Assembly (NCBI GenBank): GCA_964187785.1
Contig: OZ076411.1
Span: forward strand, 34,720,001 to 34,784,000
Direction of reading: 5' to 3'
DNA: 64,000 nucleotides
Source: Amphiscolops sp. MND2022
Lineage: Eukaryota
The notes below the pieces were generated by a model. The model worked only from the letters and a program-made list of their open reading frames with translations. It made no database searches and was not told the origin of the DNA. The position numbers and the translations under genes are program-made. Shown here piece by piece: positions 25,805-62,737 of this stretch (within the stretch, counting starts at the first letter, position 1; each line of letters begins with the position of its first letter).

Positions 25805-25937
25805 TTACAGGAAACGGCATGTATCTTAATGGGACTACTCTGACGACTATAATGACAGAATAAACACGTGACAACAAAACAAAAAAGGTATACAGATAGA
25901 TTCACAACTAAAAAACAGAATGTACAATAATATACAT

Positions 25938-36106: not shown

Positions 36107-39100
36107 GAAAAGAAGAAAGAAAAGAAAAGTTAATTTTTCCAGCTGTTCTGAATAGTTTGATTTATAATAAACACAAGGCAAAACATGAACATCCGAAACG
36201 GACGAGGAATGAGCGTAATCGCTCTTCAAGTCCTCGCCCTCAAGAACCAATTTTTAACACTTTTATTCATTAAATTTTTGAAGTACGAATACACAATTCT
36301 CTTTTAGAACAGAATAGAATGTAATTCCTTGTTATCTATGATATACAAATAACCTAATTTAGTAAGGTAGGCCCGAATTTTGTGTGAATTCAATTTGTTT
36401 ATGTCATTAGGTATCAAGTCCATCCACTTCAACCAATTGTACGTTTTGCGTAAAGTATTTTCGAGTGATTTCCGTTTCGTGACAGTTCTGCTATAAGTAG
36501 TGCTAAAGAGCCCTTTTGCCAGCCAACGTGTTGTCATAATTGCATCTGTAACATTTGGTATTTCTAGATACTGAACTGGTGACTCATTACGTAGTTGTTT
36601 AAAAAGTTCTTTAACTATTTCAAGAGTATAAAGTTCGTAGACAGTGAAAATTTTGTTATCTAACAATATATCTCTCAAGGAGTCAAATTTCTTTTTGAAA
36701 AACACTGCTCTCAAAATGCGTCTCTGAGCGTTCTCAATTTTCTTCAGATTGGTTTTAGCAGCTGATCCATACATACTTAGTCCATAGCAAATAATTGATT
36801 TGGCAAAAGAATTATAAAAATTAGTAGACATTTACGTGGATACATATGCCTTACTCTGTATATTAAACCACAGAATTTTTTAAGTTTTTTTGTGACATAA
36901 TCGAAATGTTCTCTAAATTTGAGGCTGCCGTCTAAATGTAATCCTAAGTATTTACATGCCTTTTGATAAGGTAACTCATTTCTCAAAATAGTAACTTTGT
37001 CTGGTTTGCCGCATCCAAAGGAGATTGCTTCACATTTATCTACGTTAACTGTTAGTTTATTTGAAACGAACCAATTTGTCATGTTTTTCAAGTCTTGTGT
37101 GATGAGAGGACTTGTTTTATCACCAGCGTTTAAAACTGTTGTATCATCAGCAAATGACTTTAATGACTTGGTGTAGATCGTTGATATATAAAAGGAAGAG
37201 ACGAGAACCTAAAACGGAACCCTGAGGTACACCTGTACAAATTCTTCGCTTAGATGATATAGAACAATCAGATGCCACAACCTGCCAACGATTATCGAGA
37301 TAACTTTTCACAATGTGATAGATAGGTCCTCTGAAACCGTACTTTTCAATTTTATTCAACAAAATATTATGATCCAGCGTGTCGAAAGCTTTCTGTAAGT
37401 CAATGAAACAAATTTGTCCAATACTTTTTCTATCAATTTCAGTTCCAATATACTCCGTTACAGTACTAATTGCATCGACACAAGACCTTTTTGATCTAAA
37501 ACCGAATTGAGTTGATGTCAAAATCTTTTCCTTTACACAGAATTTGACCATCCGTTTATGCAATAGCTTTTCAAACAATTTCCCCAGAGAACTAAGAAGG
37601 CTGATTGGTCTATAATTGGCTGGGTCCGATTTATCACCTTTTTTATGTAACGGTATGACTTTCGCCACTTTCAAACACGTAGGATAGGTTTTCTCCAAGA
37701 TGCATTTATTAAAGGCTATTGCTATATATTCATCCACAATGGGAGAACAGCACTTCAATATATCGTTACTGATACCATCCTCACCACAACTTTTCTTATT
37801 TTTCATCTTTTTAATTATTGATGTAACTTCAGACGCATTTGTGGGGTACACTACCATTGTGTTTTCAACTTGCTGTATTGTGTCACTATTGGTAACTTTA
37901 GGAAGATTTGAGGACAGTATTGAACCGATAGATGCGAAATACTTGTTCAAATCTTCTAAATCAGGTAATGATGAATGGGGTTGCTGCTGTTTCTTTACAG
38001 TCATAAGTGTCTTGTATATGGTTTTAGCAGTAGGATTATTTCCCAATTTGCGAAAATTTTCTTCTCGTTTTGATTCTCTGATGACTTGGGTAACGTAATT
38101 ACGGAATTGCCGGTATCTCTCCCTGTTCTCAGTACTCGAATTATCTAGCCATATCTGATACAATCGATCTCTTTTCTTTATCGCTTTCTTGATTTTGTTT
38201 GTAATCCATTGGTTTTCATTTTTAATAGATGGAACATTTTTCTCAGGAGCAACTTTGTCGACGCAATATGTGATTGTTTCTATCATCTGCGAGACAAATT
38301 CATCTACCGGAAGTGTTTGAGGTATCGATTAAAGTTTTTGATCGAGAAGGAACAGAAAATTCAAAGACCTGTCACCTTTCAGATTGTTTAAGTTACGGGT
38401 AATATCAGATTTTTCACATATCTTAGAATCATTTACTGGCACAGGTATTTTTACCAATACTGTATAATGATCGCTAATAGTCGTAAAAAGGGTTTGGGTT
38501 ACTATTTCGTTCTGCGTTATCAAATGGTCAATACAACTTTTCGACTTCGTTGTCACGCGAGTTGGTTCAAAATTACGAAGTTCGAAGGCATATGCTGCTA
38601 ATAGTGTTTCATAATTTTTTCTATCTGTGTCATCTTTCAGTGTATCGATGTTAAAGTCGCCAAAAATTACCGTTTCATTGCTTCGTGAATTCAAAAAATG
38701 TAGAAGTTTTTCTAGTTTTAGGAAAAACTGATTTAGCCGCAATGTTTCGGGCCTGTATATAACACAGATTGTTGTGGAATAGGTATCTGTAAACTGTACT
38801 TCAGTTATATTACACTCAATGTCAGAGGTGAACTCAATTGGCTTGTATTTAATGGGATTTTTCATAAAAGGCCACCCCACCAGACCTTTTCTTGAAGTTT
38901 TTACGAGGTACAGATTCAATTGGTTGGTAGTCTGTGAGAGTATATTTTTCAGCACTGTCTTCCTCTGCAATCCAGGTTTCAGTTGGTGCTAAAATATCTG
39001 GCTTGTGATCTATTGTTTCAAGTAATACTGTTCGCTCATCTTTGTGTTATCTAAGGCACTGTATATTCAGTCCAAGTATGATTCGATATGGTTGTGCTAA

Positions 39101-39676
39101 ATCTTGGTTCTTGTTATCAAACATAAAAATTGGGTTTTGCAATTGCGGTTGAAATTAGTGTTGGAAAGGAAAGATGATTTGTGTGACAACAACCAAAAAG
39201 AGCCAGCAAATGCTAAAGAAAATGCTGAAGTTGAATTTTCTTGAAATGATTCAATTTTTTTGTCTTGCCAACACTCAACGTTGAACATCATTACAGGGAC
39301 TCGTAGCACTATTAACACGTTTCAAATTAGGACTATTTATTTCAGAAAGAGCTTGATCCCGGTTTACCCGGTTTAGACGATTTGATAGTAGTGCAAGTCT
39401 ACTGCAAATTTCGTTTTTATCGTGGAAATACAAAAACTTTACGATAACCGTTTTCTTTTTTGATGTTTTGAAGTTGCCCAGAGGGTGGCATGCCTTGAAG
39501 AGGTCCGGGGTACACTCATAGTCCATATAACTGCTGAAGAAAGCTGCCATCTCCACCAAGAGGTTGCCTTCGTTTGTAACAGGGGGGTTATAAACAATTA
39601 AACAATCTTTGGAGCTGTATCTTTCTTGTTCTGACATCCGTATCTCCAGGTCAGTAACTTTGTTCTCGAGGGTAAC
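36107..39676 (-). mobile_element. CR1/L2-type LINE, 3' part (rest of ORF1; ORF2 endonuclease + RT; frameshifted)
   Basis: ORF1 (EQERYSSKDCLIV...ACHPLG...VIVKF); APE endonuclease (FGDFNID, CIDHLI, ISDHY); RT (NYRPISLL, DLQKAFD, QGSVLG, FADD); short hairpin in the 3' UTR and a (TTTTC)-like tail at 36107-36129. Confidence 0.9.
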
Positions 39677-41563
39677 TGTCGCGACCCCAGGGGTGCCACG
39701 GAAATCATATAACGAGAGGGACGCCTGAAGAAGGAAGTGAGGAAACCGACCAGGTCAGGTCAGAATCACCATGAACAAATCTAAAATAGAAGACCAATAA
39801 ACAAACCATTTGATACTATTTATATAACACGCAAAAGTACATTTTCTTCTTCTGTGCCGTACCTAAAATAATAGATATGTTAATAATTATATATTAATAG
39901 TGAATCAAGTATTTGTTTAGCCAACGCACCGACAGAAATTAATTCGGTCAACGCGTCGACTGGAGACTCGCCTCAGCGGCAGCAGTAAATTTCATTAATC
40001 AACCTGTATCAGCCAATCAGATTTGAGCGCAGTTAATACAAATTGAAGAACTGAGGCAACGTCCCAGGCAGCTTACCAGTCCGCTGAAGCTGGGACGCTC
40101 GCTCAGTCACTCTGTCTGATCAATCAATTACAAATAATCGATGCTAATTTTAGATAAATGTTTCGCAGCTTAAAATAAGCTAAATACCAAAAGAACTTCC
40201 AATGAGTAATAATCGACGATGCTTGTAGTATTTTTAACGTGTTCGGTCCACTTTGTATTTGAGCCAACTTCCCAGGCAAAGCGCTAACTTTCTTTATTAA
40301 AACAAGAGCCTGGACAGATGACCGAACGTATTTAATTAATACATATCTTATAGCTAACCGAATAACAATGTTGCCCCTGTTAGACGTGATACTTGATAAT
40401 GACATAGTAAAACAACCCCCAGTGCTATTATTCAACCCCCACATGCAGTGTTTTGTTAATGTATAGTTGAGTCAACCGCCCGGTCAACCGGCCAGGCCAC
40501 TCTAAATGAAATTCGTTAACTGGCGTTCACCCAGGATTTTATCGTTAGCTTCAATTTAAAGTGCTAATTAACGGCCATAATCATCTGATTTAGAAGAAAT
40601 CAGTGCGTTAATTTATTTATTTGATGTTTCCCTTAAATTACTAGCAGTAAAATTTGGGATTGTTCGATGATAATTTCACTTTCCTTTCCCGCTTCAGTAG
40701 CTAGGTTCATGAATTTTCAGTGCCAACTTCGGTTCGGCGTCCTGAATTGGCGGGGAATGAAGAAGAATTAACGCGGAATTGGGACTCGGCAGGAAGTTAT
40801 TCCCACTTTTCCTTTGAAGTGAAATGAAACTGAAAGCCGAGTCCCGAGGAAGCGGACCTAATTTGGACTTCATTGCCTCGGATGGACGCCGAGCTGAACA
40901 AGGTGTGAATTCACGCGCGGGATTTATCCCGCGTGTTCAGCGAAAAGTATTTATACCTGAAGCGGGTTAAGGAAAGACTCAGAATATATTTTGATTTTTG
41001 CAGAACGCTCACCTTCAAAGTTGAATATTTTTCGTAACTTTCGCTTATTTTGATAATTGTTGCCTTCGAAATTGTTTGTTATTCTCCTTTCCAGTTCCAT
41101 AGTCAAGATTTTGATATTGTTTTATTGACTAACTGATATCGTTTGGGAATAGTTTGAGGCTTATAACTGCCAATAATACTTAATTCAGCTGTTTCCTAAC
41201 CCTTACATTTTCTCGGAGAAATGCCTGAAAAAACCCAGAAAAGAAAGCTACGGAGTGACCAGAGCACTAGTCAGATAGATGAAGAAATAGCTAGTTCAAC
41301 TAACGACGAAAACGTCTTGTTATCGGATAGAGATTTTGAAGATATCTCTAGTAAAGTTGAAAATAGGCTTTCTAAGCGACTTAGGGATACCGAAGTGAAT
41401 CAACGTGAAATATTAAAGCTGATCGAAAACTTGTCATCCAAAGTCGACAACTTAACCAATGTAAATCCGGGACAGAGTTCCTTAACTTTCGAGACTGGAA
41501 TTAGTGAAATCCCTAACGACGAATTAGAAGGAGTAGAACCAGCAAGGAGCGTTAACTCCAACA
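39677..41563 (+). repeat. E2 5' LTR (1887 bp), encoding the first 114 codons of gag
   Basis: Matches 53261-55148 with roughly 35 differences by eye (~98%); gag ATG at 41221. Confidence 0.97.
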
Positions 41564-41576
41564 TGGTGACAGGAGT
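41564..41576 (+). promoter_or_regulatory. E2 primer-binding site TGGTGACAGGAGT (tRNA-Leu-like), inside the gag frame
   Basis: Directly follows the LTR-terminal CA; 12/13 match to the Leu-type PBS TGGTGTCAGGAGT. tRNA identity is inferred. Confidence 0.8.
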
Positions 41577-42610
41577 CGTTAACGAACCAATGACCAGCAA
41601 CAACACCCACGCCCGATCTTCAAGCCTGCCACCTCCAAACCAGAGGCACTCAGACGAGATTATCGACAAACTACTAGAATCTCTATACGCAACGCATAAA
41701 CAAACACCAAATCTTCCTCGCTTACCAAAAACCCTAGCAACAACAATGCCAACGTTTGACGGTAAGACAGAAAAATTCGAGCTATTTGAAGACTTGTTTC
41801 AAACTAGCCTGAAAGTCCACCCACAAATAACAGAACAAGAGAAAATACACTATTTTCACTCACTACTGCGAGGAGACGCCTTGCAAACTTTTCGGAATAT
41901 GACCGAAACAACCAAAACCAACATAAACGACATCATAGCTGGTTTCAGACGAAGATACGTCAAAACACAATCAGTCGCCACCGCTAGATGCAAGTGGGAG
42001 AACCTCACATTCGACCCGGCAAACCAAACCTTTCAAGATTTCTTAGAAACCTACCAGAAACTAGCCCAAGAAGCATACGCGGACGACGCACCTAGATTTA
42101 TAGAGACCTCGTTCTACGCAAAAATGCCCACACAACTTAAAAGGGTATTGAACTTGAAACAGCTCGCCTTGAAACAGCATCATACGAAACAATGGTGCAA
42201 CATCTGGAACGAGAAATGGAGCTCAACGGATTAGCCAACCCAGAATCCGCGACATTCACAGGCATACACAACGTGGAACCAACTAATAACCTCAACCAGG
42301 AAAGACCCCCAAAAACCGCGAGTAGCTGCTTCGGTGGTGGACATCAGGGCCACCTCCTCCGCAACTGTAGGAAGACGAACAGAGATTAACGATTCCAAAA
42401 AACCCTCAACACAACCAACACCAACCCCTGCGAAACTTGTGGTAAACTAAGCCACGAAACCAAGGATTGCTACTCGGGTGCAAACTGGGCAAACCGCCCC
42501 ACATGGTGGAAGACACCTAAACCAATATGCTCGAACAGCATACCTCTACCCCAATCAACCACACCCGAGGTTAGGCAACAACCCCAAGCAAACCAACAAC
42601 CTACCCAGCC

Positions 42611-42617
42611 AAAAAAC
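42611..42617 (+). promoter_or_regulatory. Putative -1 ribosomal frameshift heptamer A AAA AAC (gag-pol)
   Basis: Correctly phased in the gag frame one sense codon before the gag stop; the -1 frame is open into pol; E1 has the same heptamer at 20570-20576. Confidence 0.75.
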
Positions 42618-45600
42618 TACTAAAGCCACGTCTTCGCTTCGGGGACTACACTGATTTCAGATACTATACCATCTCTGAACCCCCGAAGGACTTTGATAAA
42701 GAATTGTATATGGAATGCTCTGGAGAACCATCAATCGACTGGCAGCGACGATGGCTCATCCGACGTCTCATTAAATTTAATAAGAACACCCTCGACAAAC
42801 TCCCCTACCCCGACTGGTACACCCAAAACCCTACCCACTACAACTCCACCCGAAGACCACTACTCCCCAGCTCCACACCCGAAACCTACATCTACGACCC
42901 AGACTTTCAATGTGACCCGTGCTACAACGAAACTCTATACCACACCGAAAAACTCGTTTTCAGACAATCCATCAACGTACCGTTTCACGAATTCATAGCC
43001 AGAACCAACATGGATATCTCGACAACCCCAAAGAGGAAAGACGACACAAGTCATACTCCCAAACCACAGGCTGAAGAAGAACACGACAAAGAAATCGCAG
43101 TGATCGTAACGCCACCAATGACTTCCCTTAAGTCGATACTCAAAAACTAGAACCAAACTCCACCGGTTGACTATGAGTCACCCAAGAAACTCCCAGCCAC
43201 CTCCAACGAAATACGGGCAGCTATGACGTCGTCTCCCTCTAGCCCAGAGAGCCCTGAACTCCGATACTCCACGCCCGAACCCCCGGGAAATAAAAAGAAA
43301 GCCGGGGACCTTACACAGGCAAACGAACCTGTAATAAACCCCCGGACCCGCCGTGTTAAACGAAAACTAACCAGTGAGTTTAATCCAACAAAGAACGACA
43401 ATCCTAAAACACACAACTCACCAAGAGAAGTCCAAACCCCCAGCAACGAGACACACAAGCCAGACCAAGATGAGGATTGGATTCATACCAACAAGCAACT
43501 AAACGAAATCGCAATCACAGATCCAGAAACGAGCAAAAAATGCATACCAATCTTCTCAGCCATTCACCTAAAAAAGAAACGGAAGATGCTCTTCGCCCCA
43601 ATGGATTTCAACAACCTATCAGTAGACGCACTTGTTGATTCAGGGGCGCTTGTCAACTGTCTACCAGAAAGCGAACTCCAGAAGATTAAATCAGTCAGCC
43701 CAGACAACATACTCAAAGAAATGGACCCACCCGCCTTCAAGCTGCAGGTCGCAAACAGCGACATAGAAACACCAACGAAAACCGTCCAACTCCAATTCGA
43801 ATTAGGAGATTGGACGTTTAAAGAGACGTTCATTGTAGCTACAAAGATGACAGGTCCTATCCTCGGACTAACATTCCTGAAAAACAACAGCGCCATTCTA
43901 GACGTGAGCCAGGCCCTGCTGCATTTCCCACACCTGACCTACGCAATCACTGCAGAGGACAACGAAACAGTTTCAAGACACCACAAAGTGACCATCAAAA
44001 ACCAACTCACCATCATGCCCGACCAATGCATAACAATTGAAGCTGGCATTAACCTGCGTACCATAACAAACACCACAGGAACTATCCACCCCACCGAACA
44101 ATACTCAGGAGAACACCAACTAGTAGTCGCCAGCTCTCTATCCACGGCCACAAACTCAAAAATTGAAACACGGGTCACCAACACATCACCGAACCCTTTC
44201 ACTCTCAAAAAGAACGCAAACGTCGCAGAATTCACCATACTGTCACCCCAAGAGGCTAAACAGCTCCATCCACTCAATTCGGCAGCCCTCAAGGTCTTAG
44301 CAGAAGACAATACGGAACAGGCTCTCGAATATGTCAATGAACTTCTGAAATCGTCGGAAAAACCCCAAACAACTCAGAACTTCTGGTTTCCCACGCCAGA
44401 CAACCCTGGAGATCCAGCTTCACACACCCCTATCCAAAGCAGAATCCTCAGAGAGATAGAAGAACTTTAAAACATCCAGAAACTCAACCCACACAACAGC
44501 CCCGAAGATAGAGCAGCCTTCTTAGCCAACTTCAAGTGGACCAATTCTCAACTCAGCGACGCAGACAAGAAAGACATAGAAGAGATCCTCGTCGAATACA
44601 ACGACGTCTTTGCAAGGCACCGTCTCGGCATTGGAATCAACAATGACTTCAAAATAAAACTCTCACCTAAATCAGAACAACTGCGTACACACAAAGTTTA
44701 CCATGCCCAGTCAATCTGAAGGAGGATTTGACAGTTGAGCTGGCACTGATGCACTACTACGGCATCATTACAACACTCCCCTTCAGCAAGTACGCAAGCC
44801 CAATTATTGCGCAAAGAAAACCTAACGGACGTCTTCGCCTCCTTGTTGACCTGAGGAAGATCAACAACCTAATCTCCGACGACTATATAAACAACAACCA
44901 CCCAGTGAGCACCCTCTCCGACGCCGCGCAACACCTAGCCGGAAAGAAACTGTTCTGCAAGCTTGACTGCTCTCAAGCCTACCATGTCCTGCAAATGGCA
45001 GACCAGAAATCAGTGGAACTCCTGGCGTTCAACTTTGCCAGTCGGACATTCGCCTACCTGCGACTCGCACAAGGGCTCAGCAGATCCCTCTCTTCCTTCT
45101 CGAGCTTTATGCGGGAGTACCTCAATCGAGTCATAAAAGCTGACAAAAGTGCCCAGTACGTTGACGACATCGGGATAGCAACCCATACCGCCGAGGAGCT
45201 GAAGAACAACCTGCGTGAGGTCTTCCAGTGCATTAGGGAAGCAGGTCTGCGTTTGACAATGGCTAAATGTCAGTTCGGTGCCAAGGAAGTCGAATTCCTT
45301 GGACGAACAGTCTCACCCGAAGGCATCGCCCCACAACCTCACAAGATCAAAAACTACCTACAAAAACTGTCGTTACCGAAAACCAAAAGGGCCTACAGAG
45401 ATACATCGGCTTCGTTAACTATCATCGAAACTACATACCTCGCCTTTCTGAAAAATCGCACCATTCCACGAGCTAGTCAAGGCAGACAAGCCAATCAAGA
45501 TCACAAACGAGATCATGCAGACATTCGAAAACATCAACAAAGCCCTAGACAATGCCTGCGGACTATGGCTGAAACAACCATTACCCAACAAACAATATGT

Positions 45601-47983
45601 CCTCATGACCGACGCGAACTTCAAGAATGCCGGCTAGGCCCTCATGATTGAAGAAAACGCAGATGAAAAACTGACCTCGGTCAAAAAGACATACGCCCCA
45701 GTCGCGTTTGGATCCAAAACATTATCGCCGTCACAAATCAAAATGTCAATATATGCCAAAGAATTTCTGGCTATATATTTTGCCTTCATGGAATACAGCC
45801 ACATTTTGTGGGGATCGACCAAACCAGTCATCGTTCTAACAGACAACAAATCTGTTACACGTTTCTTCCAAACCAAAATAATACCACCAGCGTTGTGGAA
45901 TGCCTGCGATTTCGTCCTACAGTTTAATTTCACAATCGCCCACGTTCCAGGAAGGATGAACACTGCCGCAGACTTCCTCTCACGACTCGACCTGGATCCA
46001 AAAGAGAAAGTCCAACTACTCATAAGAGACGACATTCAAACTACCCCAATAGAGGTACACATTCAGGCCTCCAACGTAGCCGAAGAAGAACAATTCTACT
46101 TCCTCCCCGAAGACGACATCGAAACAGAAGAGCAAATTTGGGAGAGGAAGCAGAGAGCCCGCAAAAAGATACAGGAGAACGACACCCCACAAACGCCAGG
46201 AGAAGAAACAAACAACAACACAACCCACGCTGAAGAAACCACTGTCGTATTTCGAACGGAAATCACCAGACGCACACAAAACTCTGAAGTGAACGAAAAA
46301 CCCCTCCCCCGTGACATGAGACACCAACAGGACCGAGACAAAGTCCTCCGAAATTATAAATTACGCCTACTCAAAGAACCATACGATAAACACCTAATAG
46401 CTACAGACCACACAGCACTCCAATACACGGCCCAAGAATCCCGGATCATACTCAAAGACGGACTGCTATACCGGCAGTATTTCGGGGAGACCGGGGCAGT
46501 CAAATACTTGCAGGTCTTACTACCAGAACAACTAGTCGACTCATTTATAGAGGCCCACCACGGATCGCACGACAAACATCCTGGGATAACAAAGGTGATA
46601 CAACAGTGTAGAGAAAAATACTAATACCCAGGTCTTGCAGCAAAAATAGCCAAACACATCAATCAATGCATGAAATGCATGCAAACAAAACGGACGGACA
46701 ACCGTCTCCTCACCCCACCAATGATTGATACCTCCAAACTAGCATTGGGACCAGAAGACGCCCCAGAAATGGACATCGTCCCGTTCGATGAACCATCGAA
46801 TGGATTCACAGCGATAGTCACAGCCATGGACATTTTCTCACGCTACCTGTTCACATACTGCGTCAACAGGATAGACGCAAAGACAATCGCAAGAGTACTA
46901 GTAGACATTATGACACGACATGCCTACCTGCCTACAACAATAATAACCGATAAATGAACCCAATTCATGTCAGAAGTAGTAGCAGACACAACACGCGTAC
47001 TGGGCATTCAACTACGCCACGCCACAACAAAACACGCCCAAACGATAGACATCCTGGAACGCTGTCACGCATCCCTTAAAGAAGCTCTGAAAATCTCAAC
47101 AGGGGAAAGACGAACGATGTGGCACCAGTTCGTACCAACAGCCACACTAAACTATAACACAACCTATCATTCGGAACTCGGGTGCGAACCCAGTCGGGTG
47201 TTTCATGGTAGAATACCATACAATGTTCTCGACCTCAAATTTGGCCTTAAACAGAACCGACAACCAAATCCAACAACAGACATAGGCGAAGAAGTCGTCC
47301 AAAAAACCCGAATGATACACGAATCAGTGAGCAAACACCTCCTACACTCATACATACGGTACAAACAGTACTATGACAAAACAGCAGCAGCTCACCCATT
47401 AGCAGCAAACGACTACTGCTATGCACTACACCCCCAGGCAAACAACCAGGGATCGAAATTACCTTTTCGGGAGTTCTTATGGACAGGACCATTCGTAATA
47501 GTCAAAACTCTCCCCAACAATAACTACCTAATTCGCAAATTACAAACAAACAAAACACAAATCCTACACAGGATCCGACTGAAACCATGCCCTATCAAAG
47601 GCCGCCTGCCACACATCCAGGTTCAAACAAAGGATTTCCAACCAGATAACGAAGTCGAAATCTTACACGATGATTTATACGCCCTAGCATGGCAGTCTGG
47701 TTTTGAACACTTCGTGATGACACCCGAACACAATACGCATAGCGAACCTACTATCATATCTACAGACACCGAAGACAACCTACAAAATGGTACCCAGGAC
47801 GCTGACCCAGACGCCCTTCCAGAAAACCATCCCGATCAACCGGAAACCCAACCCGAACCCGGCCCTAACCCAGAACCTAGTTCCCCCCGGAAAGGAAAAT
47901 ACCACCTTCGTAGCAACCCCCCTTCAAATTGGAAAAGAGATTACGCTTACTACGACCCAGTGGTAATTAGCTCAAACGAATAA
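42617..47983 (+). pseudogene. pol: E2 pol: unassigned N-terminal domain, protease, dUTPase-like spacer, RT, RNase H, integrase with GPF tail (several lesions)
   Basis: LVDSGALVN; LVDLRKINN and YVDDIGIA; LMTDA and YAKEFLAI; HHGSHDKHPG...CMKC, MDIFSRY, IITDK, LERCHASLK, WTGPFVI. Confidence 0.95.
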
Positions 47984-48402
47984 ACTCTCAAAACGAATTC
48001 ATGAAATATTTGTACGGTACATACTCTACTTACGCAACTGATAGCCCACGACTGACTCAAATCACTACTAACTCAACTACGAACTCAAAAGAAAAACGAT
48101 ACAAAGGAGAAAAGAGTGTATTGAGGATGCCCCAGTTTAATTTTCTCGTTTTATATACATAGAACTGCCAACACCCCCAGAGGAGGTTTTTTTTATTCTC
48201 GAGAATTCAACTGCATTTTTGCCTGGCTGAAGTTTACCATAAATATCAACAAACCCAGTGGGATCAAGAATACAAATAATACATCAAGTCGTATAATAAA
48301 AACCAATACAAAGTTTACAATTCATGCACAACAACGACAAAGACTATACTAAAGTTTGCAAATAACTACAGCAAATGAAGTTCATCATCGGACCCTGGAC
48401 CA

Positions 48403-51400
48403 TTACTCGCCAGACGCGCCTTTGCCCGACTTTCCAGAACTCGCCCGGCTTGAGCTACGCGAATGAGATGCACCTTGCTGTTTCCTTTTCTTCTCTTTCA
48501 ACCTCTGAGCCACATCACTAGATCCACTAACAGACGCAACAGCCTTAGCAAGTTGACCGGCTCCACCCGAAACTGGGGCAGAAGCAGAAGCACCCTGGTG
48601 GACAGAAGACACAACACCAGACCCGGATTCGACGTCTCGGGCAGACGGCAGTTTACTAGTAGGAGAAGTAACAGAGAAAGCACATAGCCCTGCCCGTCGA
48701 CGCCACTCGGCAACTTGCCCCATGTAGTAACCATTGAAACTGTCACGAAGGTCGCGATACATATCCTGCCGAGCAAGCACATACAGAGAACGCCAAGGAG
48801 CAAAGGTAACATCGGACATGAAAACATGTCCGGATGGTAAATTAGCCTTCAATTCGTCAAGGCAGTCCTTTGTCAGCAGTTCCCCAGAGACGAAACCACT
48901 GTCGGAAATATACGATTGTACTGCCCGGACCGAAGACAACAGGACCTTCTCAGGAATTGCAGCCCCACTGAGCGAAATCTCCACATCTGGATACTGAACT
49001 ACCCGTGGCACAACCCCAACTGACACTATGCCGACCACCTTCGACAAATGCAGACGACACTCCAACAGTCCACTCTGCCACAGAAAACAAAAACTGTCCT
49101 TGATGGTCGAGATCACTTGCCGGTTACGTCGTCGCAAATCAACCAACAACGATTTGAACTCGTTAGCAGAACCCTCGGCCTCCACAGAAGACAACCGCCC
49201 ACAAGTCTGCAGACAAGATACCAAGTCACGAAACAGCGAAACGGTATATGCCTCTTCCCCCATAAGAAGCATGTCCGGGGAAAAACAACTGAGGCTGGAA
49301 CACAATCGAGAAGTTGCGTAGGCAGACGTATTCAGAACTTTCAAAAATTTCATCAAAAACCATGGCATTCCCGCAGAAAACCCCGCTTGACAGCATCACT
49401 GCAACCATCCAATGCCTTGATAACGATAGGCTCACTTCGCAAACAATCGATGTAGGACACATTAGCCCATGTTGACAATGGCCGCCCAACATACTCACTC
49501 CACTCTTCAATAGCAGGCAACTCAGACAACTTCTTCACCTTCCCCAGAAGACTCCAGTAGAAGAAACAGAACTCGGCATAATTCCGACAACTATAGTCGG
49601 TGACCGATTTGTCAGATTGTGTCTCAAAGTTTGACTGAAAACATGACACCAACACATGCAACAAGCTCAGACGGGGCAAAATGTAGGTATCTGACACAAT
49701 CACTTGACCCAAGTCGACAGGAGTCCTTCCACGGAGAGTAAGTGTACTATCACTTTCCTTGAAGAACAGTTTAACATCCTCCCAATGGGCTACAAGCTCT
49801 TCCAGCACGACACCAAAAGAAGCAAAAGGAGTATCCCGGCGTCGGACACACTGGCGAAACTCTACAAGCCCTAATAACCAGGGCTGATGAACGGCTTTAT
49901 CCAAGCGCAATAGCAAGAATTCCAGAACTGCAAAGGGATCCAAACAGTGGGCACCGACCATACCCGCGTCCCGAACATGATCCTTGAAGACTGACGACGA
50001 ATACTCCAGCAAAGAGAGAGGCGACGACCGACCATGTGACCGACACCACTCACTGAACACGTTGAACAAAGTCGAAGAGCAGCCGAGCAAGGCAACAGGG
50101 GCCTGCCCCTCAGCCAGGATAGATAAAACCCGCGACAAGCAACGGATTTCCGCATCACAAATGCCAGTACTGTAAGGCTCCCACAAGAGGCACACCTCTC
50201 GAACACGCCCATCAACTTGACACCGAACAATACAATTGACTCCATTGAACTCCTCGCGAAACAACACACTGAATACAGAATCCTTACACCAAGACTGCAC
50301 TCCGCGAAGAATACGAGGATATAACGTCTGACTGACAATGACAAGGCACTCAGTTTTACTCCACGTGGCCTGCGCATAGGTCTACTCGACTGGGATGGTA
50401 GCACGGAATTGGTTCCAAAGACGCCGCAGGAAACTATGGGAACCACCACTACGGAGAAGCTCAAATAGCCCCGCCACCAACGTTGCAGACTGCACATTCG
50501 ACACAACACCGACCAGAGCATCCACTTCGTCTTCTCTGAAAGGATTTTTCTTCCCCAAAGTGACAGGAGGAGTTTCTTCAATCTCGGCACGCAATTCCGC
50601 TGAAATAGTAGCCACTTCCACAGCATCAAACTGAGGCGTGTAAAACACATCCTCATGATCTAGTCGATAACGACGATCTTTTAAGTAATGGCTCTTACGG
50701 CTGAAATGACGCCAGATCTCAGGAGCACCACGACTCAGGAATTTGATGTCCTTTTGACAAATGGCACAATTGAAGCCATTCGGGCTCTTATCAGTCCTCT
50801 GACTCACAAATAATTGAGGGATAGCATGCACAGCCATTTCCTTGCGCAACACGTGCCGCTCCGTCTGCCTCCTTTTCCTGCGTTCATACTTGACAAACAG
50901 TTTACGTTTTGTCTTTTCTTCCTCATCCAACTGACTTCCTCGTCCGGGTAACTGAATGCCTTTTGACTTCAACAGCCGAACAACTTCGTCCATACCTAAA
51001 CCACACAAACAAATGACAACCCAAGTCTTACGCAGGTGATTAACGACACCAAATAAAACACACGACCGCCCACCAAAATCACCAAACTAAACTAAACATA
51101 ATTCGACCGACCACAAAAGAAGAGGAAACTTCACTTACGACGCGACAGAGATTTTTCTTCCAACAGTGACTGAGATCGTTCCAGTCGCACTGCCGCTTGA
51201 CCATAAGCCAGAATTTGACTCGACGACAGACACACTGCACCGGTAGGCACCTCCTTTAAGCCAGCTAAACAACACAGAACAGTGAAAATAACTAGCCACA
51301 GCAAACCCTACTGTACATGAAGCTTATGGACAAACGACGACAACAATGCAATCCAAAAAAGCACAACTTTACCTTTAGCCCATTCATTATGAAGAACAGG

Positions 51401-52435
51401 CTTCTCCAATCCTTCAGCAGGACGACAATGCTGCGTGCGCTCATGCCGCAAATGTGAACCACTAGGTGCCATACTAGCAAGTTGAAACGGGGAAACATCA
51501 GACGACCCGCCGGGCAAACCACCCACATCAGTGAAAACGTCTCCCTCCTGAGGTAAAGGAGTCTGTGCTGAAAACAACACGCAGTAAACTACCAAGTTCT
51601 GGAACACAACAATGAAACCAAGAACCGAACTACCTACCTTCATCGTCTCCACAAAGGACGCCAGAGAAACCAAGTCCAGGACTGTCATCAGAGCTCAACA
51701 CATTAGTGCGCACCCGCTTTGTTGAGCCACCCAGAATAGCTGAGAGCAGACGTTTACTGCGACGTGAACCGACATCGCCAGCAGCAGAAGAAAGGGTGAA
51801 ATCCTCATCACTCGGATCATCTGAGAGCCCTACGGAAACAGAGGTAGATGAAATGACGCGTCTGCATACTAGCATCAAAACTGTTAACTGGCCATTAACA
51901 AATAGCTAAGCAACCCACCTGATTGTTCCATTAGGTAATCCAGTCCATTGCGAGCATTACTGCCAGAAGAATGGACAGACCCAGCATCGTCGTCACCACG
52001 AGCAGAACTGTCTTCAGGAGGAACATCACCGGAATTCCGATCAATCTCGTCACCAGAACTGTCGTCTGTATCAACCTCGCCAAAACCGGCAACTCTCCGA
52101 GACACACGAACCTCAGCCTCTGACGGGACATTTGAATCAAAAGGGACCACATCGTTCAGGTCATCTTCCAACTGAACTTCTCTTCCCTCTTCCACAACGA
52201 CCAACCGACCGTCAGGAGGCGACTCCACAACAGCACATATTTCATCGACTGCTTTACTCACAGCACTCTGTTCCGCTGCCCCAGGGACACCAACAATTTG
52301 ACGCGCATCAGTTCCAACACTCGCATCTCCTGTATCGACTCGCGCCCCACCCAGAGACTCACCTTCACTCTCCAAAATTCCAATCTGCTGCGACTGAGCA
52401 AAACGGACAGCATCCTCATCAGTAGAATCTGCCAT
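48403..52435 (-). pseudogene. E2 antisense five-exon accessory gene (~1220 aa): acidic N-terminus + CCHH zinc finger + hAT-transposase-like body; one nonsense codon and one frameshift
   Basis: Predicted exons (minus strand) 52435-51919, 51868-51638, 51567-51373, 51264-51139 and 50995-48403. All four introns are GT-AG and phase 1, and they join the exons in frame. TAG at 50384-50382; 1-nt loss in a T-run near 49355; minus-strand AATAAA at 48197-48192. Confidence 0.8.
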
Positions 52436-52719
52436 TTTGTCTGTTCAAAGCAATCTAAAAAATTAAAACACCAAGATAAACCAATAGAAGACGTGGCGTA
52501 AAACCAACGCTAATATTATTATCATAATCTACTAATATGACGTAGTGGAAGTCATTCAGTCTGCCAGCTGAAAACTTCCTCAATCACGCAAGCGGCGTGA
52601 ACAATTACAAAGAACAGAATTATCATTCAATTTTTCAGCTATTCCCAAGACGGTCGCTCAGCATTCATCGGCAATCTACAACCGTATTACTTTTACCGAT
52701 TACTTTCATCAGTAATACA

Positions 52720-53358
52720 ATGGCATCTCTTGATCTCAACTTATCAAGCGATAGTTTCATTCTGGAACGCGACCAAGCTGCTTATTTGAACAACCCTGCG
52801 GCGCAATCAACACCTAAGACACGACCTAACCCCCATTCGGCAGAACAATCACCTATTATTCAGGATGTGTACGAAATTATAAATACAGGGGGAAAACACA
52901 TCGTGCTTTACCACGAAACAGCCCCAGCTTCAAAACTAGCAACGGCACAAGAGGATACACTCCCGATCAGAAGGTTTACCAAAGTCAACCCGATTATACC
53001 AGATGACATATTTATGAGCCCACCGAGAAATTATGACAACATGAATAGCTGGCTATACAGTCCCAACGACGGCACAATGAGCCCAATATCTGAAACCAGC
53101 TCAATTGGCTATTTCTCGGGAAGTGACTGGACAACTGACTCGTCCTGATTCTCCTATGATTCATTTATACAATCTGTGTTCCAACAACCAATCTCGTCGC
53201 CGTTTAGACCAGTTTCCCCACTCCCTCCTATACCGGACGCCCCTCAAGAAAGCCGGGGACTGTCGCGACCCCAGGGGTGCCACGGAAATCATATAACGAG
53301 AGGGACGCCTGAAGAAGGAAGTGAGGAAACCGACCAGGTCAGGTCAGAATCACCATGA
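52720..53358 (+). pseudogene. E2 sense accessory ORF3 (S/P/T-rich, ~212 codons), crossing the PPT into the 3' LTR; one in-frame TGA
   Basis: ORF 52720-53148 and ORF 53176-53358 share one frame, separated only by TGA 53146-53148; the last ~32 codons lie inside the LTR. Confidence 0.55.
53246..53260 (+). promoter_or_regulatory. E2 polypurine tract (imperfect)
   Basis: AAGAAAGCCGGGGAC directly before the 3' LTR TGT. Confidence 0.7.
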
Positions 53359-55148
53359 ACAAATCTAAAATAGAAGACCAATAAACAAACCATTTGATAC
53401 TATATAAATAACACGCAAAAGTACATTTTCTTCTTCTGTGCCGTACCTAAAATAATAGATATGTAAATAGGTATATATTAATAGTGAATGCAGTATTTGT
53501 TTAGCCAACGCACCGACAGAAATTAATTCGGTCAACGCGTCGACTGGAGACTCGCCTCAGCGGCAGCAGTAAATTTCATTAATCAACCTGTACCAGCCAA
53601 TCAGATTTGAGCGCAGTTAATACAAATTGAAGAACTGAGGCAACGTCCCAGGCAGCTTACCAGTCCGCTGAAGCTGGGACGCTCGCTCAGTCACTCTATC
53701 TGATCAATCAATTACAAATAATCGATGCTAATTTTAGATAAATGTTTCGCAGCTTAAAAGAAGCTAAATACCAAAAGAACTTCCAATGAGTAATAATCGA
53801 CGATGCTTGTAGTATTTTTAACGTGTTCGATCCGCCTTGTATTTGAGTCAACTTCCCAGGCAAAGCGCTAACTTTCTTTAATAAAACAAGAGCCTGGACA
53901 GATGACCGAACGTATTTAATTAATACATATCTTATAGCTAACCGAATAACAATGTTGCCCCTGTTAGACGTGATACTTGATAATGACATAGTAAAACAAC
54001 CCCCAGTGCTATTATTCAACCCCCACATGCAGTGTTTTGTTAATGTATAGTTGAGTCAACCGCCCGGTCAACCGGCCAGGCCACTCTGAATGAAATTCGT
54101 TACCTGGCGTTCACCCAGGATTTTATCGTTAGCTTCAATTTAAAGTGCTAATTAACGGCCATAATCATCTGATTTAGAAGAAATCAGTGCTGTTAATTTA
54201 TTTATTTGATGTTTCCCTTAAATTACTAGCAGTAAAATTTGGGATTGTTCGATGATAATTTCACTTTCCTTTCCCGCTTCAGTAGCTAGGTTCATGAATT
54301 TTCAGTGCCAACTTCGGTTCGGCGTCCTGAATTGGCGGGGAATGAAGAAGAAGTAACGCGGAATTGGGACTCGGCAGGAAGTGATTCCCACTTTTCCTTT
54401 GAAGTTAGTTGAAACTGAAAGCCGAGTCCCGAGGAAGCGGACCTAATTTGGACTTCCTTGCCTCGGATGGACGCCGAGCTGAACAAGGTGTGAATTCACG
54501 CGCGGGATTTATCCCGCGTGTCTAACGAAAAGTATTTATACCTGAAGCGGGTTAAGGAAAGACTCAGAATATTTTTTGATTTTTGCAGAACGCTAACCTT
54601 CAAGGTTGAATATTTTTCGTAACTTTCGCTTATTTTGATAATTGTTGCCTTCGAAATTGTTTGTTATTCTCCATCCCAGTTCCATAGTCAAGATTTGGAT
54701 ATTGTTTTATTGACTAACTGATATCGTTTGGGAATAGTTTGAGGCTTATAACTGCCAATAATACTTAATTCAGCGGTTTCCTAACCCTTACATTTTCTCG
54801 GAGAAATGCCTGAAAAAACACAGAAAAGAAAGCTACGGAGTGACCAGAGCACTAGTCAGATAGATGAAGAAATAGCTAGTTCAACTAACGACGAAAACGT
54901 CTTGTTATCGGATAGAGATTTTGAAGATATCTCTAGTAAAGTTGAAAATAGGCTTTCTAAGCGACTTAGGGATACCGAAGTGAATCAACGTGAAATATTA
55001 AAGCTGATCGAAAATTTGTCATCCAAAGTCGACAACTTAACCAATGTAAATCCGGGACAGAGTTCCTTAACTTTCGAGACTGGAATTAGTGAAATCCCTA
55101 ACGACGAATTAGAAGGAGTAGAACCAGCAAGGAGCGTTAACTCCAACA
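53261..55148 (+). repeat. E2 3' LTR (1888 bp)
   Basis: TGTCGCGACC...CTCCAACA followed by TSD GTAAC. Confidence 0.97.
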
Positions 55149-55290
55149 GTAACAATCCGTTCGTCTTTCTCTTTTAGCAATTTTGCGAGATTTTGTAAAA
55201 TAATCTTCAATTTTGGGTCATCTAGTTGATCGATTTGTTGTAAAAGTTCTTCAGCCATGTTTAAAATCAAAGTTAGCTTGCTCGAGTTTG
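55149..55290 (-). mobile_element. 5' end of the interrupted CR1/L2-type LINE (ORF1 start)
   Basis: ATG 55258: MAEELLQQIDQLDDPKLKIILQNLAKLLKEKDERIVT joins in frame across the TSD to LENKVTDLEIRMSEQERY at 39671 and below. Confidence 0.85.
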
Positions 55291-59092: not shown

Positions 59093-60955
59093 ACGCTTGA
59101 TATAGGGGAAGTGCCTGATGACTGGGCTACTTCGATATACCAACCGATTTTCAAGAAAGGGGAAAAAACGAATCCTAACAATTACAGGGGTATATCTCTT
59201 GCTAGCTGTCTCTGGAAACTCTTCACCTCAGTACTTACTGAAAGAATACGCGTAGATATGGAAAAACGGGATGTGTTAGGAATTGAACAAGCTGGCTTTA
59301 GGAACAAAATGGGGTGTGCTGATCATGTTTTTGTCTTATCGTCACTCATGAGTTTGTACCTTGCGCGAAAGAAAAAACTGTTTGTGACATTCATCAACTA
59401 TGAAAAAGCTTCTGATAAAGTGGATCATGGACTTCTCTGGCAAAAACTTGGACAAGCACAGGTAACAGGAAAAGTTTTGAGAATCATCCAAAATCTTTAT
59501 CAGAAAACTAAAGCGTGTGTTAGGGTAAATGGTGAAATTTCTGATATTTTCGATTGTAATATAGGGGTCCGTCAAGGGGACAACTTATCTCCGCTTCTAT
59601 TCATAATCTTTTTGAACGACTTCAACACTTTCATGCAGAGCGGGTTCGAGGGTATACGCCTGACACCGGACCAAAATAGTAATTTGAGAACCCTTCTGAA
59701 GTTGTACTCTCTTTTATATGCAGATGATACGATACTGCTAAGTCAAACGGAAAAAGACATGCAACGAGCTCTTGATGCAACCACAAAATACTGCAATGAG
59801 AACAAAATGACGATAAATGCGTCTAAAACAAAGTATATGGTATGCTCACGGGGAAAAATTAGGAAAAAAATAAATCTTTTTGTGAATAACACTGCAATAG
59901 AAAGTGTCGATACATTTTGCTACCTAGGAGTTGTGTTCAAGTATAAGAACACCTTTCAAGCTGCAATCAAAAACAACGTTGACAAAGCTGAAAAAGCTCT
60001 TTTCAAATTAGAAGAGCTCTTTAGTAAAATCGATTTTGGAATTGACACTAAGTTACATCTCTTTGATGCGGTGATAGAGCCTATATTACTTTATGGTTGT
60101 GAAGTATGGGGTTATGAGAGTATGGAACAGATTGAAATTTTTCATCGCTATTTTCTGAGACACCTTCTTCGAGTACGAAAAAATGCACCGAAAGCTATGT
60201 TATGTGGGGAGTTGGGGAAAAAGAATTGAAGTATACAGTTTGGAAAAGAATGGCATCTTTCTGGAAAAAACTTATCAACGAAGGAAACAACCTCGCCGGT
60301 TTGATATATCAGATGATAAATATTAACGATCATGAACATAAATGGATGTTGGGTGTTAAACATATTATAGTGAATTGTGGAATACCTATGGTAAATACTT
60401 ACATTAATTTTGTAAGTTCTTTCTTTTTCGAGTTCAAGAAATATATTGAGCGGAAGTGTGAAGATCTTGCAACTCAGTCTTGGTACTCAATGCTGAACAC
60501 TAATTCACTATGTGATTGCTATAGGGAATTTAAACATGGACTCTTTCAGGAGCCTTATTTACGCAAACTGAAGGCAAAGTATAGGATACAACTTAGTCGC
60601 TTCCGCTGCGCTCCATACATGTCATCAGGAGTAAAAGGGAGAATAACGGGCAACCACAGTCAACATTGTTCGTTCTGCCATAAAGAATGCAAAGCAGATG
60701 ATTATCACTGGGTTATGGTCTGCGAGAACTTTAGAGACATAAGGGAGGAACTTATCCCGAAATTTTTTCAATCGTTTCCAAATATAACGAAATTTGACCA
60801 GCTGATGAATTCCATGAACATTGAACTTCTTGAAAATCTTTCTGTTCTGTGCGGTGCTATATGTAATGCTGGAACGTCTGGTACCAGCTAATCAACCTGT
60901 CTTGTAATTTATACGCCCTTTGGGCAACAAATTAATAATTAAAATTTCATTTCAT
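59093..60955 (+). mobile_element. 5'-truncated non-LTR retrotransposon (RT + C-terminal Cys/His region), degenerate
   Basis: NYRGISL, EQAGFR, FINYEKASD (degenerate), GVRQGDNLSPLLF, LLYADDT; frameshift near 60225; CSFC...DDYHWVMVC; 3' tail TTTCATTTCATT. Clade not determined (RTE-X-like by inference). Confidence 0.85.
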
Positions 60956-62737
60956 TAAAAAATTCAATTCTACGATTATGTAGCAAATTGCCTTCGTTCA
61001 GATTGCCAACTTCTATCCATTGTTGATGACGTAGGATTTCGTAGATTATTGAACTATCTAACTATGGAGTTCATCAACTATGAAAAAGCTTCTGATAAAG
61101 TGGATCATGGACTTCTCTGGCAAAAACTTGGACAAGCACAGGTAACAGGAAAAGTTTTGAGAATCATCCAAAATCTTTATCAGAAAACTAAAGCGTGTGT
61201 TAGGGTAAATGGTGAAATTTCTGATATTTTCGATTGTAATATAGGGGTCCGTCAAGGGGACAACTTATCTCCGCTTCTATTCATAATCTTTTTGAACGAC
61301 TTCAACACTTTCATGCAGAGCGGGTTCGAGGGTATACGCCTGACACCGGACCAAAATAGTAATTTGAGAACCCTTCTGAAGTTGTACTCTCTTTTATATG
61401 CAGATGATACGATACTGCTAAGTCAAACGGAAAAAGACATGCAACGAGCTCTTGATGCAACCACAAAATACTGCAATGAGAACAAAATGACGATAAATGC
61501 GTCTAAAACAAAGTATATGGTATGCTCACGGGGAAAAATTAGGAAAAAAATAAATCTTTTTGTGAATAACACTGCAATAGAAAGTGTCGATACATTTTGC
61601 TACCTAGGAGTTGTGTTCAAGTATAAGAACACCTTTCAAGCTGCAATCAAAAACAACGTTGACAAAGCTGAAAAAGCTCTTTTCAAATTAGAAGAGCTCT
61701 TTAGTAAAATCGATTTTGGAATTGACACTAAGTTACATCTCTTTGATGCGGTGATAGAGCCTATATTACTTTATGGTTGTGAAGTATGGGGTTATGAGAG
61801 TATGGAACAGATTGAAATTTTTCATCGCTATTTTCTGAGACACCTTCTTCGAGTACGAAAAAATGCACCGAAAGCTATGTTATGTGGGGAGTTGGGGAAA
61901 AAGAATTGAAGTATACAGTTTGGAAAAGAATGGCATCTTTCTGGAAAAAACTTATCAACGAAGGAAACAACCTCGCCGGTTTGATATATCAGATGATAAA
62001 TATTAACGATCATGAACATAAATGGATGTTGGGTGTTAAACATATTATAGTGAATTGTGGAATACCTATGGTAAATACTTACATTAATTTTGTAAGTTCT
62101 TTCTTTTTCGAGTTCAAGAAATATATTGAGCGGAAGTGTGAAGATCTTGCAACTCAGTCTTGGTACTCAATGCTGAACACTAATTCACTATGTGATTGCT
62201 ATAGGGAATTTAAACATGGACTCTTTCAGGAGCCTTATTTACGCAAACTGAAGGCAAAGTATAGGATACAACTTAGTCGCTTCCGCTGCGCTCCATACAT
62301 GTCATCAGGAGTAAAAGGGAGAATAACGGGCAACCACAGTCAACATTGTTCGTTCTGCCATAAAGAATGCAAAGCAGATGATTATCACTGGGTTATGGTC
62401 TGCGAGAACTTTAGAGACATAAGGGAGGAACTTATCCCGAAATTTTTTCAATCGTTTCCAAATATAACGAAATTTGACCAGCTGATGAATTCCATGAACA
62501 TTGAACTTCTTGAAAATCTTTCTGTTCTGTGCGGTGCTATATGTAATGCTGGAACGTCTGGTACCAGCTAATCAACCTGTCTTGTAATTTATACGCCCTT
62601 TGGGCAACAAATTAATAATTAAAATTTCATTTCATTAAAAAATTCAATTCTACGATTATGTAGCAAATTGCCTTCGTTCAGATTGCCAACTTCTATCCAT
62701 TGTTGATGACGTAGGATTTCGTAGATTATTGAACTAT
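59390..62737 (+). repeat. Tandem duplication of 1668 bp (59390-61057 and 61070-62737) with a 12-bp junction filler
   Basis: Period 1680 bp; no differences seen by eye; filler CTAACTATGGAG at 61058-61069. Confidence 0.95.

Follow-up and report, generated by a model that had tools for sequence, protein, structure and literature searches.

Transposases of the hAT type have been taken over by host genomes, as in GTF2IRD2, which has a fused hAT domain (PMC10641963), and in the SLEEPER genes (PMC3499209). The accessory genes of long terminal repeat (LTR) retrotransposons form a second theme. Plant gypsy elements termed Tat/Retand, Grande and RIRE2 have antisense extra open reading frames (ORFs) between pol and the 3' LTR (PMC11963269, PMC7264820), and these antisense ORFs bear Transposase_28 (PF04195), a domain of unknown function (PMC11963269). 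In a passage of the same source, HBZ of HTLV-1 is presented as the spliced antisense gene of a complex retrovirus that encodes a nuclear regulatory protein (PMC11963269). In bdelloid rotifers, LTR retrotransposons have captured extra ORFs, which include env-like, DEDDy, GDSL and other types (PMC5408684). A stretch of 64,000 nucleotides (nt) from Amphiscolops sp. MND2022 (contig OZ076411.1, positions 34,720,001 to 34,784,000; hereafter the window, with positions counted from its first letter) contains a gypsy LTR retrotransposon, E2, with a large minus-strand gene whose product appears to be derived from a hAT transposase.

Transposase domestication is known as an act of the host. As for antisense accessory genes of LTR elements, the known cases come mostly from plants and complex retroviruses, and what they do is obscure. 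Both themes seem to join in E2 and its relatives, where a retrotransposon lineage has long kept a hAT-derived protein whose gene has a real exon-intron structure. It is considered fairly probable that a gypsy clade keeps this antisense five-exon gene, which encodes about 1180 amino acids (aa) when intact, as a standing accessory factor that binds DNA in the nucleus and is not catalytic. It seems that one mobile element has turned the enzyme of another to its own use. Direct support exists for the gene model, the fold, the selection, the constant context and the lack of conserved acidic residues where the catalytic ones would be expected. A full-text search of open-access papers turned up no LTR retrotransposon described as having a hAT-like gene.

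The antisense gene and its product

The gene is on the minus strand between the end of the integrase (47983) and the 3' LTR of E2. The minus strand has stop-free segments at 52444-51887, 51905-51633, 51694-51311, 51307-51134, 51086-50385, 50381-49356 and 49395-48406. The last three, of 234, 342 and 330 codons, correspond in succession, from one end to the other, to proteins of about 850 aa that are unbroken in public assemblies; their identities to one intact relative, P0158, are 88%, 78% and 62%. An earlier note on this DNA had described a minus-strand gene at this place with two lesions, a TAG at 50384-50382 and a 1-nt frameshift in a T-run near 49355. The gene is real, and comparison with P0158 and with the relative L007 finds both lesions and only these two. 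The TAG, exactly one codon, is at residue 190 of P0158 and is a Ser codon in L007. The frameshift, a one-base loss by comparison with L007, sits within the conserved stretch ...RECHGF/LMKFLKVL. With one stop and one frameshift the window copy is, judged by its reading frame, unable to make the protein.

Upstream of 51086 the frame switches four times, and at each switch there are a donor of consensus type, a tract rich in pyrimidines and an acceptor. When four GT-AG introns are excised, the frame is open from an ATG at 52435 to the TAG of the first lesion, and the total is about 1207 codons. The earlier note had joined all fragments into one protein of about 1220 aa. The single gene stands, but its N-terminal pieces are exons joined by four introns. 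The features of the gene and its surroundings, with the homologue that occurs in a second element of the window (E1), are the following.

51919-52435, minus: exon 1, with the ATG at 52435, an acidic low-complexity N-terminus and a conserved start M-x-x-S-T-D-E-D
51830-51918, minus: intron 1, 89 nt, GTGGGT...CCGTAG, unusually conserved
51638-51829, minus: exon 2, Ser/Asp-rich with basic patches
51568-51637, minus: intron 2, 70 nt, GTAGGT...TTTCAG, with splice-site consensus
51373-51567, minus: exon 3, from the gene model
51265-51372, minus: intron 3, 108 nt, GTAAAG...TTTAG, without a counterpart in L003, exactly at the junction
51139-51264, minus: exon 4, with the second half of a conserved motif, ...EW.KAGL..VP.GAVCLSSSQ.LA.G.AAVRLER
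50996-51138, minus: intron 4, 143 nt, GTAAGT...TTTAG, kept in L003 too
48403-50995, minus: exon 5, with 62-88% aa identity to intact P0158 over three pieces
50688-50768, minus: CCHH zinc finger C-x2-C-x16-H-x5-H, CAICQKDIKFLSRGAPEIWRHFSRKSH, of BED-like pattern
50382-50384, minus: lesion 1, the in-frame TAG between the first two of the last three stop-free segments
48696-50357, minus: whole hAT-transposase-like folded core as predicted (AlphaFold confidence 80-95; Foldseek matches to Hermes only)
50016-50273, minus: predicted RNase H-like beta1-beta2-beta3-alpha-beta4-alpha-beta5 segment, mapped through P0158
about 49356-49362, minus: lesion 2, the one-base loss in a T-run between the last two segments
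48192-48197, minus: AATAAA, candidate poly(A) signal about 205 nt past the antisense stop
52436-52719, no strand assigned: conserved spacer of 284 nt that separates the start codon of the antisense gene from that of a conserved sense ORF (ORF3), with invariant blocks
26203-30122, minus: homologue of the antisense gene in E1, more divergent and decayed

Exon 5 encodes a stretch resembling a nuclear localization signal (NLS), the zinc finger, the hAT-like core and a Ser/Lys-rich tail, and ends with the stop TAA at 48405-48403. Canonical GT-AG sites are common to E2 and to the related loci L004, L001, L002 and L007, and the exon-5 acceptor TTTAG/ (the slash marks the junction here and below) is conserved among relatives. 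Splicing at the predicted sites gives uninterrupted proteins of 1176 aa in L004 and 1180 aa in L007. As a control, the last junction was moved by 1 or 2 nt, and stops then appear at codons 311-340 in both L004 and L007. Extra frameshifts in the N-terminal part were considered and rejected in favour of introns, given the conserved GT-AG sites and the open spliced frames of L004 and L007. It should be added that the intron-4 acceptor of L007 (L007 9946-9958) reads TAA/AG and not TAG, which is either a splice-site lesion in a copy that is intact elsewhere or a non-canonical site.

L003, from a different assembly, reads through the intron-3 site (about 330-345 of L003), with ...EWQK/AGLG... compared with ...EWAK/AGLK... 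in spliced E2. The precise absence of the intron is a signature of loss via a spliced transcript and would imply splicing in vivo.

The order of domains from the N- to the C-terminus is an acidic Ser/Asp-rich N-terminus, probably disordered, then a short conserved motif, a basic NLS-like helix, the CCHH finger and the hAT-like core. The NLS-like stretch is basic and bipartite, KTKRK-x10-RRKRR. The finger, already recognized in the earlier note, has Cys and His residues that are nearly invariant in the family alignment A1, and it is modelled as beta-beta-alpha. Pfam zf-BED gave no match to it.

The family is without a Pfam domain, and no name for it was found in the literature and database collection searched. 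Pfam searches with six E2 pieces, the relative P0035, all 16 members of A1 and segments of P0158 gave no hAT, BED or other domain. PF05699, the C-terminal hAT dimerisation domain, had no match at E <= 5-10 in P0035, the 16 A1 members or the P0158 segments. The Pfam comparison suggested in the earlier note, for hAT dimerisation and a BED finger, was negative for both. HMMER, run on the sequences in PDB both from one sequence and from a profile, gave noise only.

It is structural modelling that points to hAT. AlphaFold models were made of P0035 with 16 sequences (predicted local distance difference test, pLDDT, 69; predicted template modelling score, pTM, 0.61) and of P0158 with 28 sequences (pLDDT 73, pTM 0.65; five models all 70-73). 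Both have a confident core (80-95) with the order beta-beta-beta-alpha-beta-alpha-beta, followed by a large all-alpha region. In Foldseek comparisons of both models with PDB, the top 12 matches are all to the Hermes hAT transposase, with E 3e-6 to 6e-4 and probability 1.00. These alignments cover about 600 columns at 10-13% identity, with template modelling (TM) scores normalised to Hermes of 0.46-0.57 and root-mean-square deviations (RMSD) of 9-12 A. The next PDB match has E >= 0.02 and probability <= 0.12, and no other transposase or integrase is above that. In BFVD, a viral structure library, the top match is a Pandoravirus hAT-dimerisation-domain protein (E 1.6e-4, probability 1.00).

A hAT-transposase fold is supported by these models, with a predicted core of about 550 aa made up of an RNase H-like part, a large all-alpha insertion and C-terminal helices. 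The length of the structural alignment suggests that a C-terminal dimerisation region is also present in the modelled fold. The earlier note had proposed a hAT derivation and had treated a lack of profile or structural similarity to hAT transposases as fatal to it. Similarity to Hermes was found, and the claim holds at the level of fold (Hermes, two AlphaFold models, the Pandoravirus match), although no sequence profile detects hAT.

The expected catalytic residues were looked for by column counts in 28 sequences, in a register set by predicted secondary structure and not by residue-level superposition on Hermes. Strand beta1 reads F-S-[LVI]-[SA]-[LF]-[QR]-[SE] and has no conserved acidic residue. 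The segment after beta4, G-C-[SP]-P, has none either. A candidate C-terminal helix, preceded by S-G-x-x-[LV]-P, has an invariant Q-S. L005 and L006, although they are deeply divergent, have the same pattern at the expected catalytic positions. The DDE residues appear to have been lost, and we infer that the protein is a non-catalytic transposase derivative. In hAT transposases the catalytic Glu lies in an S-E-R-x-F-S-like block, and the comparison of this block with the invariant Q-S helix is a lead only. An invariant Trp about 68 residues past the beta4 position, which we take as a possible match to the conserved hAT Trp, is likewise a lead. A search for terminal inverted repeats (TIRs) around the gene gave no convincing pair; the short AT-rich pairs found have 81-92% complementarity, which is at chance level.

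Two non-coding parts of the gene region are conserved. Intron 1 has a mean identity of 81%, as against 46-48% in the neighbouring exons and about 40% in the other introns, and nothing else in the 5' half of the gene is as conserved. Its equivalents are at 9040-9129 of L004 and 9064-9154 of L007. It holds the palindromes GACGCGTC and TGGCCA, and it has no Rfam match. RNA folding of both strands gave minimum free energies of -17.6 and -12.6 kcal/mol, with no unusual stability by a crude shuffle control. Perhaps intron 1 is a protein-binding site, and it may be treated as a candidate for one. The invariant blocks of the spacer at 52436-52719 are GTTCACGCCGCTTGC, GCTGGCAGACTGA, TGACGTAA, which resembles a cAMP response element (CRE), and CGTTGGTTTTACGCCACGTCTTC. 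From its position and conservation the spacer is a candidate bidirectional internal promoter.

Copies, selection and context

An exhaustive search of 1.8 billion representatives gave 104 relatives, all of which belong to this antisense-gene family. Word-based searches gave >20 clusters of ORFs of 730-890 aa with 18-104 near-identical members each, which are present in ENA only and are without names or domains. With the family profile as query, the word-based search brought up close relatives only. In two clusters at 90% identity, about half of the members listed are full length. No stand-alone copy of the gene was found among the 104 exhaustive-search matches or the loci examined. A scan of JGI metagenomes with the family alignment gave 319 pattern matches, and 0 were confirmed.

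Between element lineages, synonymous divergence of the gene (dS) is saturated (>2.5), nonsynonymous divergence (dN) is 0.16-0.35, and dN/dS is 0.05-0.12. By region, dN/dS is about 0.05 in the hAT-like core, about 0.055 in the zinc-finger region, about 0.2 in the acidic N-terminus and 0.4-0.47 in the C-terminal tail. For comparison, pol of E2 and L007 has values of 0.04-0.085. By these estimates the antisense gene is under purifying selection, and the constraint on its core is as strong as that on pol. The gene is not a chance reading frame, because it has 104 homologues, dozens of intact ORFs of 800-890 aa and a dN/dS near 0.1. The earlier note had said that a dN/dS near 1, with no intact copy in the genome, would count against the gene; many copies are intact and dN/dS is far below 1.

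The gene is antisense and immediately 3' of the integrase at every locus examined. These are E2 and eight homologues, E1, L001-L004, L006, L007 and L005, the last of which was counted after tblastn had located its decayed pol. The loci compared come from three ENA assemblies, and their pol identities range from 98% down to about 35-45%. The antisense protein diverges to about 26% identity across lineages, and L005 and L006 match a hidden Markov model (HMM) of the family along nearly the full length of the model.

E1 (about 17745-34300), the other gypsy element of the window, belongs to a different gypsy family, with a pol 39-52% identical to the E2-type pol. The zinc finger of its antisense gene (28848-28708) shares 38% identity with that of E2, and the family HMM matches at 29208-28696 (E 4e-11) and, near the C-terminus, at 26769-26203 (E 0.003), in collinear order. 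Because position and orientation are constant across divergent pol lineages, the association of gene and element is old and is not a chance nested insertion. In the region of the 3' LTR of E1, at 32009-34277, there is an internal duplication, with three copies of an LTR segment about 1.2 kb apart.

The history of the gene is not entirely that of its carrier. Nucleotide identity between L004 and L007 reaches 97% in gag-pol and 91% in the region of the LTR and ORF3; in exon 5 it drops to 66%. Between E2 and L007, dS is about 0.6-1.1 in pol and >3 in the core. This mosaic of L004 and L007, together with the contrast in dS between E2 and L007, indicates that the accessory-gene cassette has been swapped between lineages by recombination.

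Carrier element and other features of the window

E2 is one complete insertion of 15.5 kb at 39677-55148. Direct repeats of 98% identity are found at 39675-41563 and 53259-55148, and reading of the ends sets the limits of the LTRs, 1.9 kb each, which start with TG and finish with CA. Its features, apart from the antisense gene, are as follows.

39677-41563, plus: 5' LTR, 98% identical to 53261-55148, with TG...CA ends read directly
53261-55148, plus: 3' LTR, from the repeat match and the ends as read
39672-39676 on the left and 55149-55153 on the right, no strand: 5-bp target-site duplication GTAAC, read directly
41564-41581, plus: primer-binding-site-like TGGTGACAGGAG..., which starts with TGG and abuts the 5' LTR
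53246-53260, plus: polypurine-tract-like AAGAAAGCCGGGGAC, which abuts the 3' LTR
41221-47983, plus: gag and pol (protease, PR; reverse transcriptase, RT; RNase H; integrase, IN), decayed, from Pfam and tblastn
52720-53148, plus: sense ORF3, with 52-61% aa identity to L007, L001 and L002 (tblastx/tblastn)

The plus strand has Pfam matches in the order Retrotrans_gag/DUF1759, gag-asp_proteas, RVT_1, RT_RNaseH, rve and Integrase_p58_C. With this gag-PR-RT-RNase H-IN order, the LTRs, the target duplication, the primer-binding site and the polypurine tract, the carrier is a Ty3/gypsy-type LTR retrotransposon, in agreement with the earlier note. A tRNA scan for a partner of the primer-binding-like sequence of E2 found none. 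The copy is decayed throughout, its gag and pol being broken as well as its antisense gene. Compared with intact L007, whose pol is 1758 aa in length, gag of E2 has 1 frame break and pol is spread over four frame segments; gag and pol have 78-95% aa identity to those of L007 (tblastn).

The ATG of gag, at 41221, is 343 nt inside the 5' LTR, and its frame continues across the primer-binding site. Because gag begins inside the LTR, the 3' LTR holds a copy of the first 114 gag codons (41221-41563 / 54806-55148). A gag fragment at 54806-55177 had raised the question of a second element in tandem. This was dropped, since the LTR ends and the GTAAC duplication put the start of gag within the LTR.

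ORF3 is the fourth conserved reading frame of these elements. In intact relatives it encodes 216 aa and extends into the 3' LTR (L007 7698-8348, minus; L004 7674-8324, minus). In E2 it is truncated by a stop at 53146-53148. A Pfam search found no known domain in ORF3, and an Rfam scan of the whole window gave no match.

Elsewhere in the window, an intronless ORF of 453 aa at 4987-6348 (minus) has a Galactosyl_T domain, with beta-1,3-galactosyltransferase 5 as its nearest solved relative, and is probably a host gene. Elements of the long interspersed (LINE) type, with APE endonuclease and RT, are at 37147-38970 (minus) and 59111-62571 (plus). The latter has a tandem duplication of 1680 nt, in which 300-nt copies at 59390-59689 and 61070-61369 are 100% identical.

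Proposed role of the protein and comparison with known systems

In the explanation favoured here, transcription of the gene would start at a promoter inside the element, in the conserved spacer near the 3' LTR. Its protein would no longer cut DNA, and would serve the element in the nucleus as an accessory factor that oligomerises and binds specific DNA sequences. It might be a transactivator or regulator of the LTR or of the internal promoter, or it might be a tether for the integration complex; an anti-silencing factor is a further candidate. Many host-domesticated hAT proteins are likewise built from an acidic region and a DNA-binding domain, and such proteins often lose catalytic residues. 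The introns would outlast retrotransposition because they are introns only on the strand opposite to that of the genomic RNA. Antisense introns can persist in retroelements for the reason that the RNA that is reverse transcribed is the other strand, a property used in retrotransposition reporter cassettes. A narrower version of the proposal is offered only tentatively, namely that an old and diversified gypsy clade, probably of animals, domesticated a dead hAT protein as a regulator or targeting factor, which would bind the blocks of intron 1 and of the spacer and be autoregulatory, and that the cassette was swapped.

Some observations weigh against the proposal. What is said of splicing, of the promoter and of the poly(A) site comes from sequence and its comparison only. 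The relationship to hAT depends on predicted structures, with TM scores that are moderate (about 0.5), while all sequence-profile tests are negative. Acidic residues nearby are invariant, D224, E252, E258 and E268 in P0158 numbering, such that a non-canonical active site is conceivable.

These acidic residues, several of them in or near the RNase H-like sheet, raise the question of whether the protein is a still-active hAT-type transposase, which would give the element a second, DNA-level mobility or would cleave DNA in its life cycle. The whole hAT architecture is kept and selection on the core matches that on pol, as an enzyme would require. However, no lineage examined, L005 and L006 included, has a conserved D or E in beta1 or after beta4, and the gene has no TIRs around it. 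The insertion itself has the TG...CA ends of LTRs and a duplication of 5 bp, whereas the target duplication of hAT elements is typically 8 bp, and an active transposase is regarded as unlikely. Nor need a likeness in fold be homology: a different RNase H-like protein, such as a copy of the element's own integrase or RNase H that has since diverged, or a member of another transposase superfamily, might give the same picture. The low identity, the RMSD of 9-12 A and a TM of about 0.5 leave room for this, as do the absence of a Pfam hAT domain and the fact that Hermes is the sole hAT transposase among the PDB matches. Yet about 600 columns are aligned, including the all-alpha insertion that sets hAT apart, and no other DDE transposase or integrase in PDB does better than E 0.02. 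An independent library, BFVD, also has a hAT protein as its top match, and the N-terminal CCHH finger and the domain order agree with hAT. A resemblance without common descent is judged quite unlikely on these grounds.

The gene could also travel as a passenger with no role for the element, whether as a nested hAT transposon or as a piece of a host gene picked up by transduction. LTR elements do acquire foreign sequence, the E2 copy is broken, and the cassette has a history partly apart from gag-pol, as the exon 5 of L004 and L007 illustrates. A passenger would hardly be expected in the same position and orientation at all loci examined, over the whole span of pol divergence and three assemblies, with many full-length ORFs, a dN/dS of 0.05-0.12 at saturated dS and no stand-alone copy among the 104 matches or the loci examined. 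This reading is very improbable and is already largely refuted. A slim chance of the same order is given to the antisense RNA as the main selected product, for example as a regulator of the sense genomic RNA, with the long ORF as a secondary matter. Antisense transcription of retroelements is often regulatory, and conservation is higher in intron 1 and in the spacer than in the nearby coding exons. An RNA function leaves unexplained an open frame of about 1180 codons over five exons in two independent copies, and a core dN/dS of 0.05 with synonymous sites saturated.

If the protein is a retained, non-catalytic accessory factor, the family would be well suited to the question of what a transposase fold without catalysis contributes to a retroelement. 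It is also a natural case of introns preserved through retrotransposition on the antisense strand.

Among the systems described above, the bdelloid elements resemble the E2 type in that animal LTR elements have acquired and kept foreign ORFs. They differ in that their ORFs are not reported as hAT-like or antisense; the words transposase, hAT and opposite are absent from the paper, and antisense is mentioned for small RNAs only (PMC5408684). HBZ is likewise an antisense spliced gene in the 3' part of an integrated retroelement, although splicing in E2 is deduced from sequence. HBZ is a small bZIP protein driven by the 3' LTR, whereas the E2-type protein is about 1180 aa, appears to be transposase-derived and has its candidate promoter about 0.8 kb inside the 3' LTR. 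The plant Tat/Retand elements are similar in the place and orientation of the extra gene, in the long region from pol to the 3' LTR and in a suspected nuclear or DNA-binding role. The E2-type protein, unlike theirs, has no PF04195 match and has a predicted hAT fold. The host genome, with its LINEs that bear an APE endonuclease, a B3GALT5-like gene and a DUF1759 gag, also seems not to be that of a flowering plant and is probably that of an animal.

With Hermes and other hAT transposases the E2-type protein has in common an N-terminal CCHH finger, an RNase H-like sheet, a large all-alpha insertion and C-terminal helices, as far as the models go. It differs in having no sequence-profile likeness, no conserved DDE at the expected positions and no TIRs or 8-bp duplication. 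Its gene, moreover, is inside an LTR retrotransposon, has four introns and encodes about 330 additional aa at the N-terminus, of which the first part is acidic.

The nearest functional analogues are the ZBED family, DAYSLEEPER, GTF2IRD2 and SLEEPER, with which it would share a hAT core under purifying selection and a role as a DNA-binding or oligomerising factor; their BED-type finger has a possible counterpart in its CCHH finger of BED-like pattern. Those are single- or low-copy host genes, whereas the gene of E2 and its relatives is multi-copy and always antisense in a retrotransposon. It co-diverges with the element, with some recombination, and the domesticator here appears to be another transposon.

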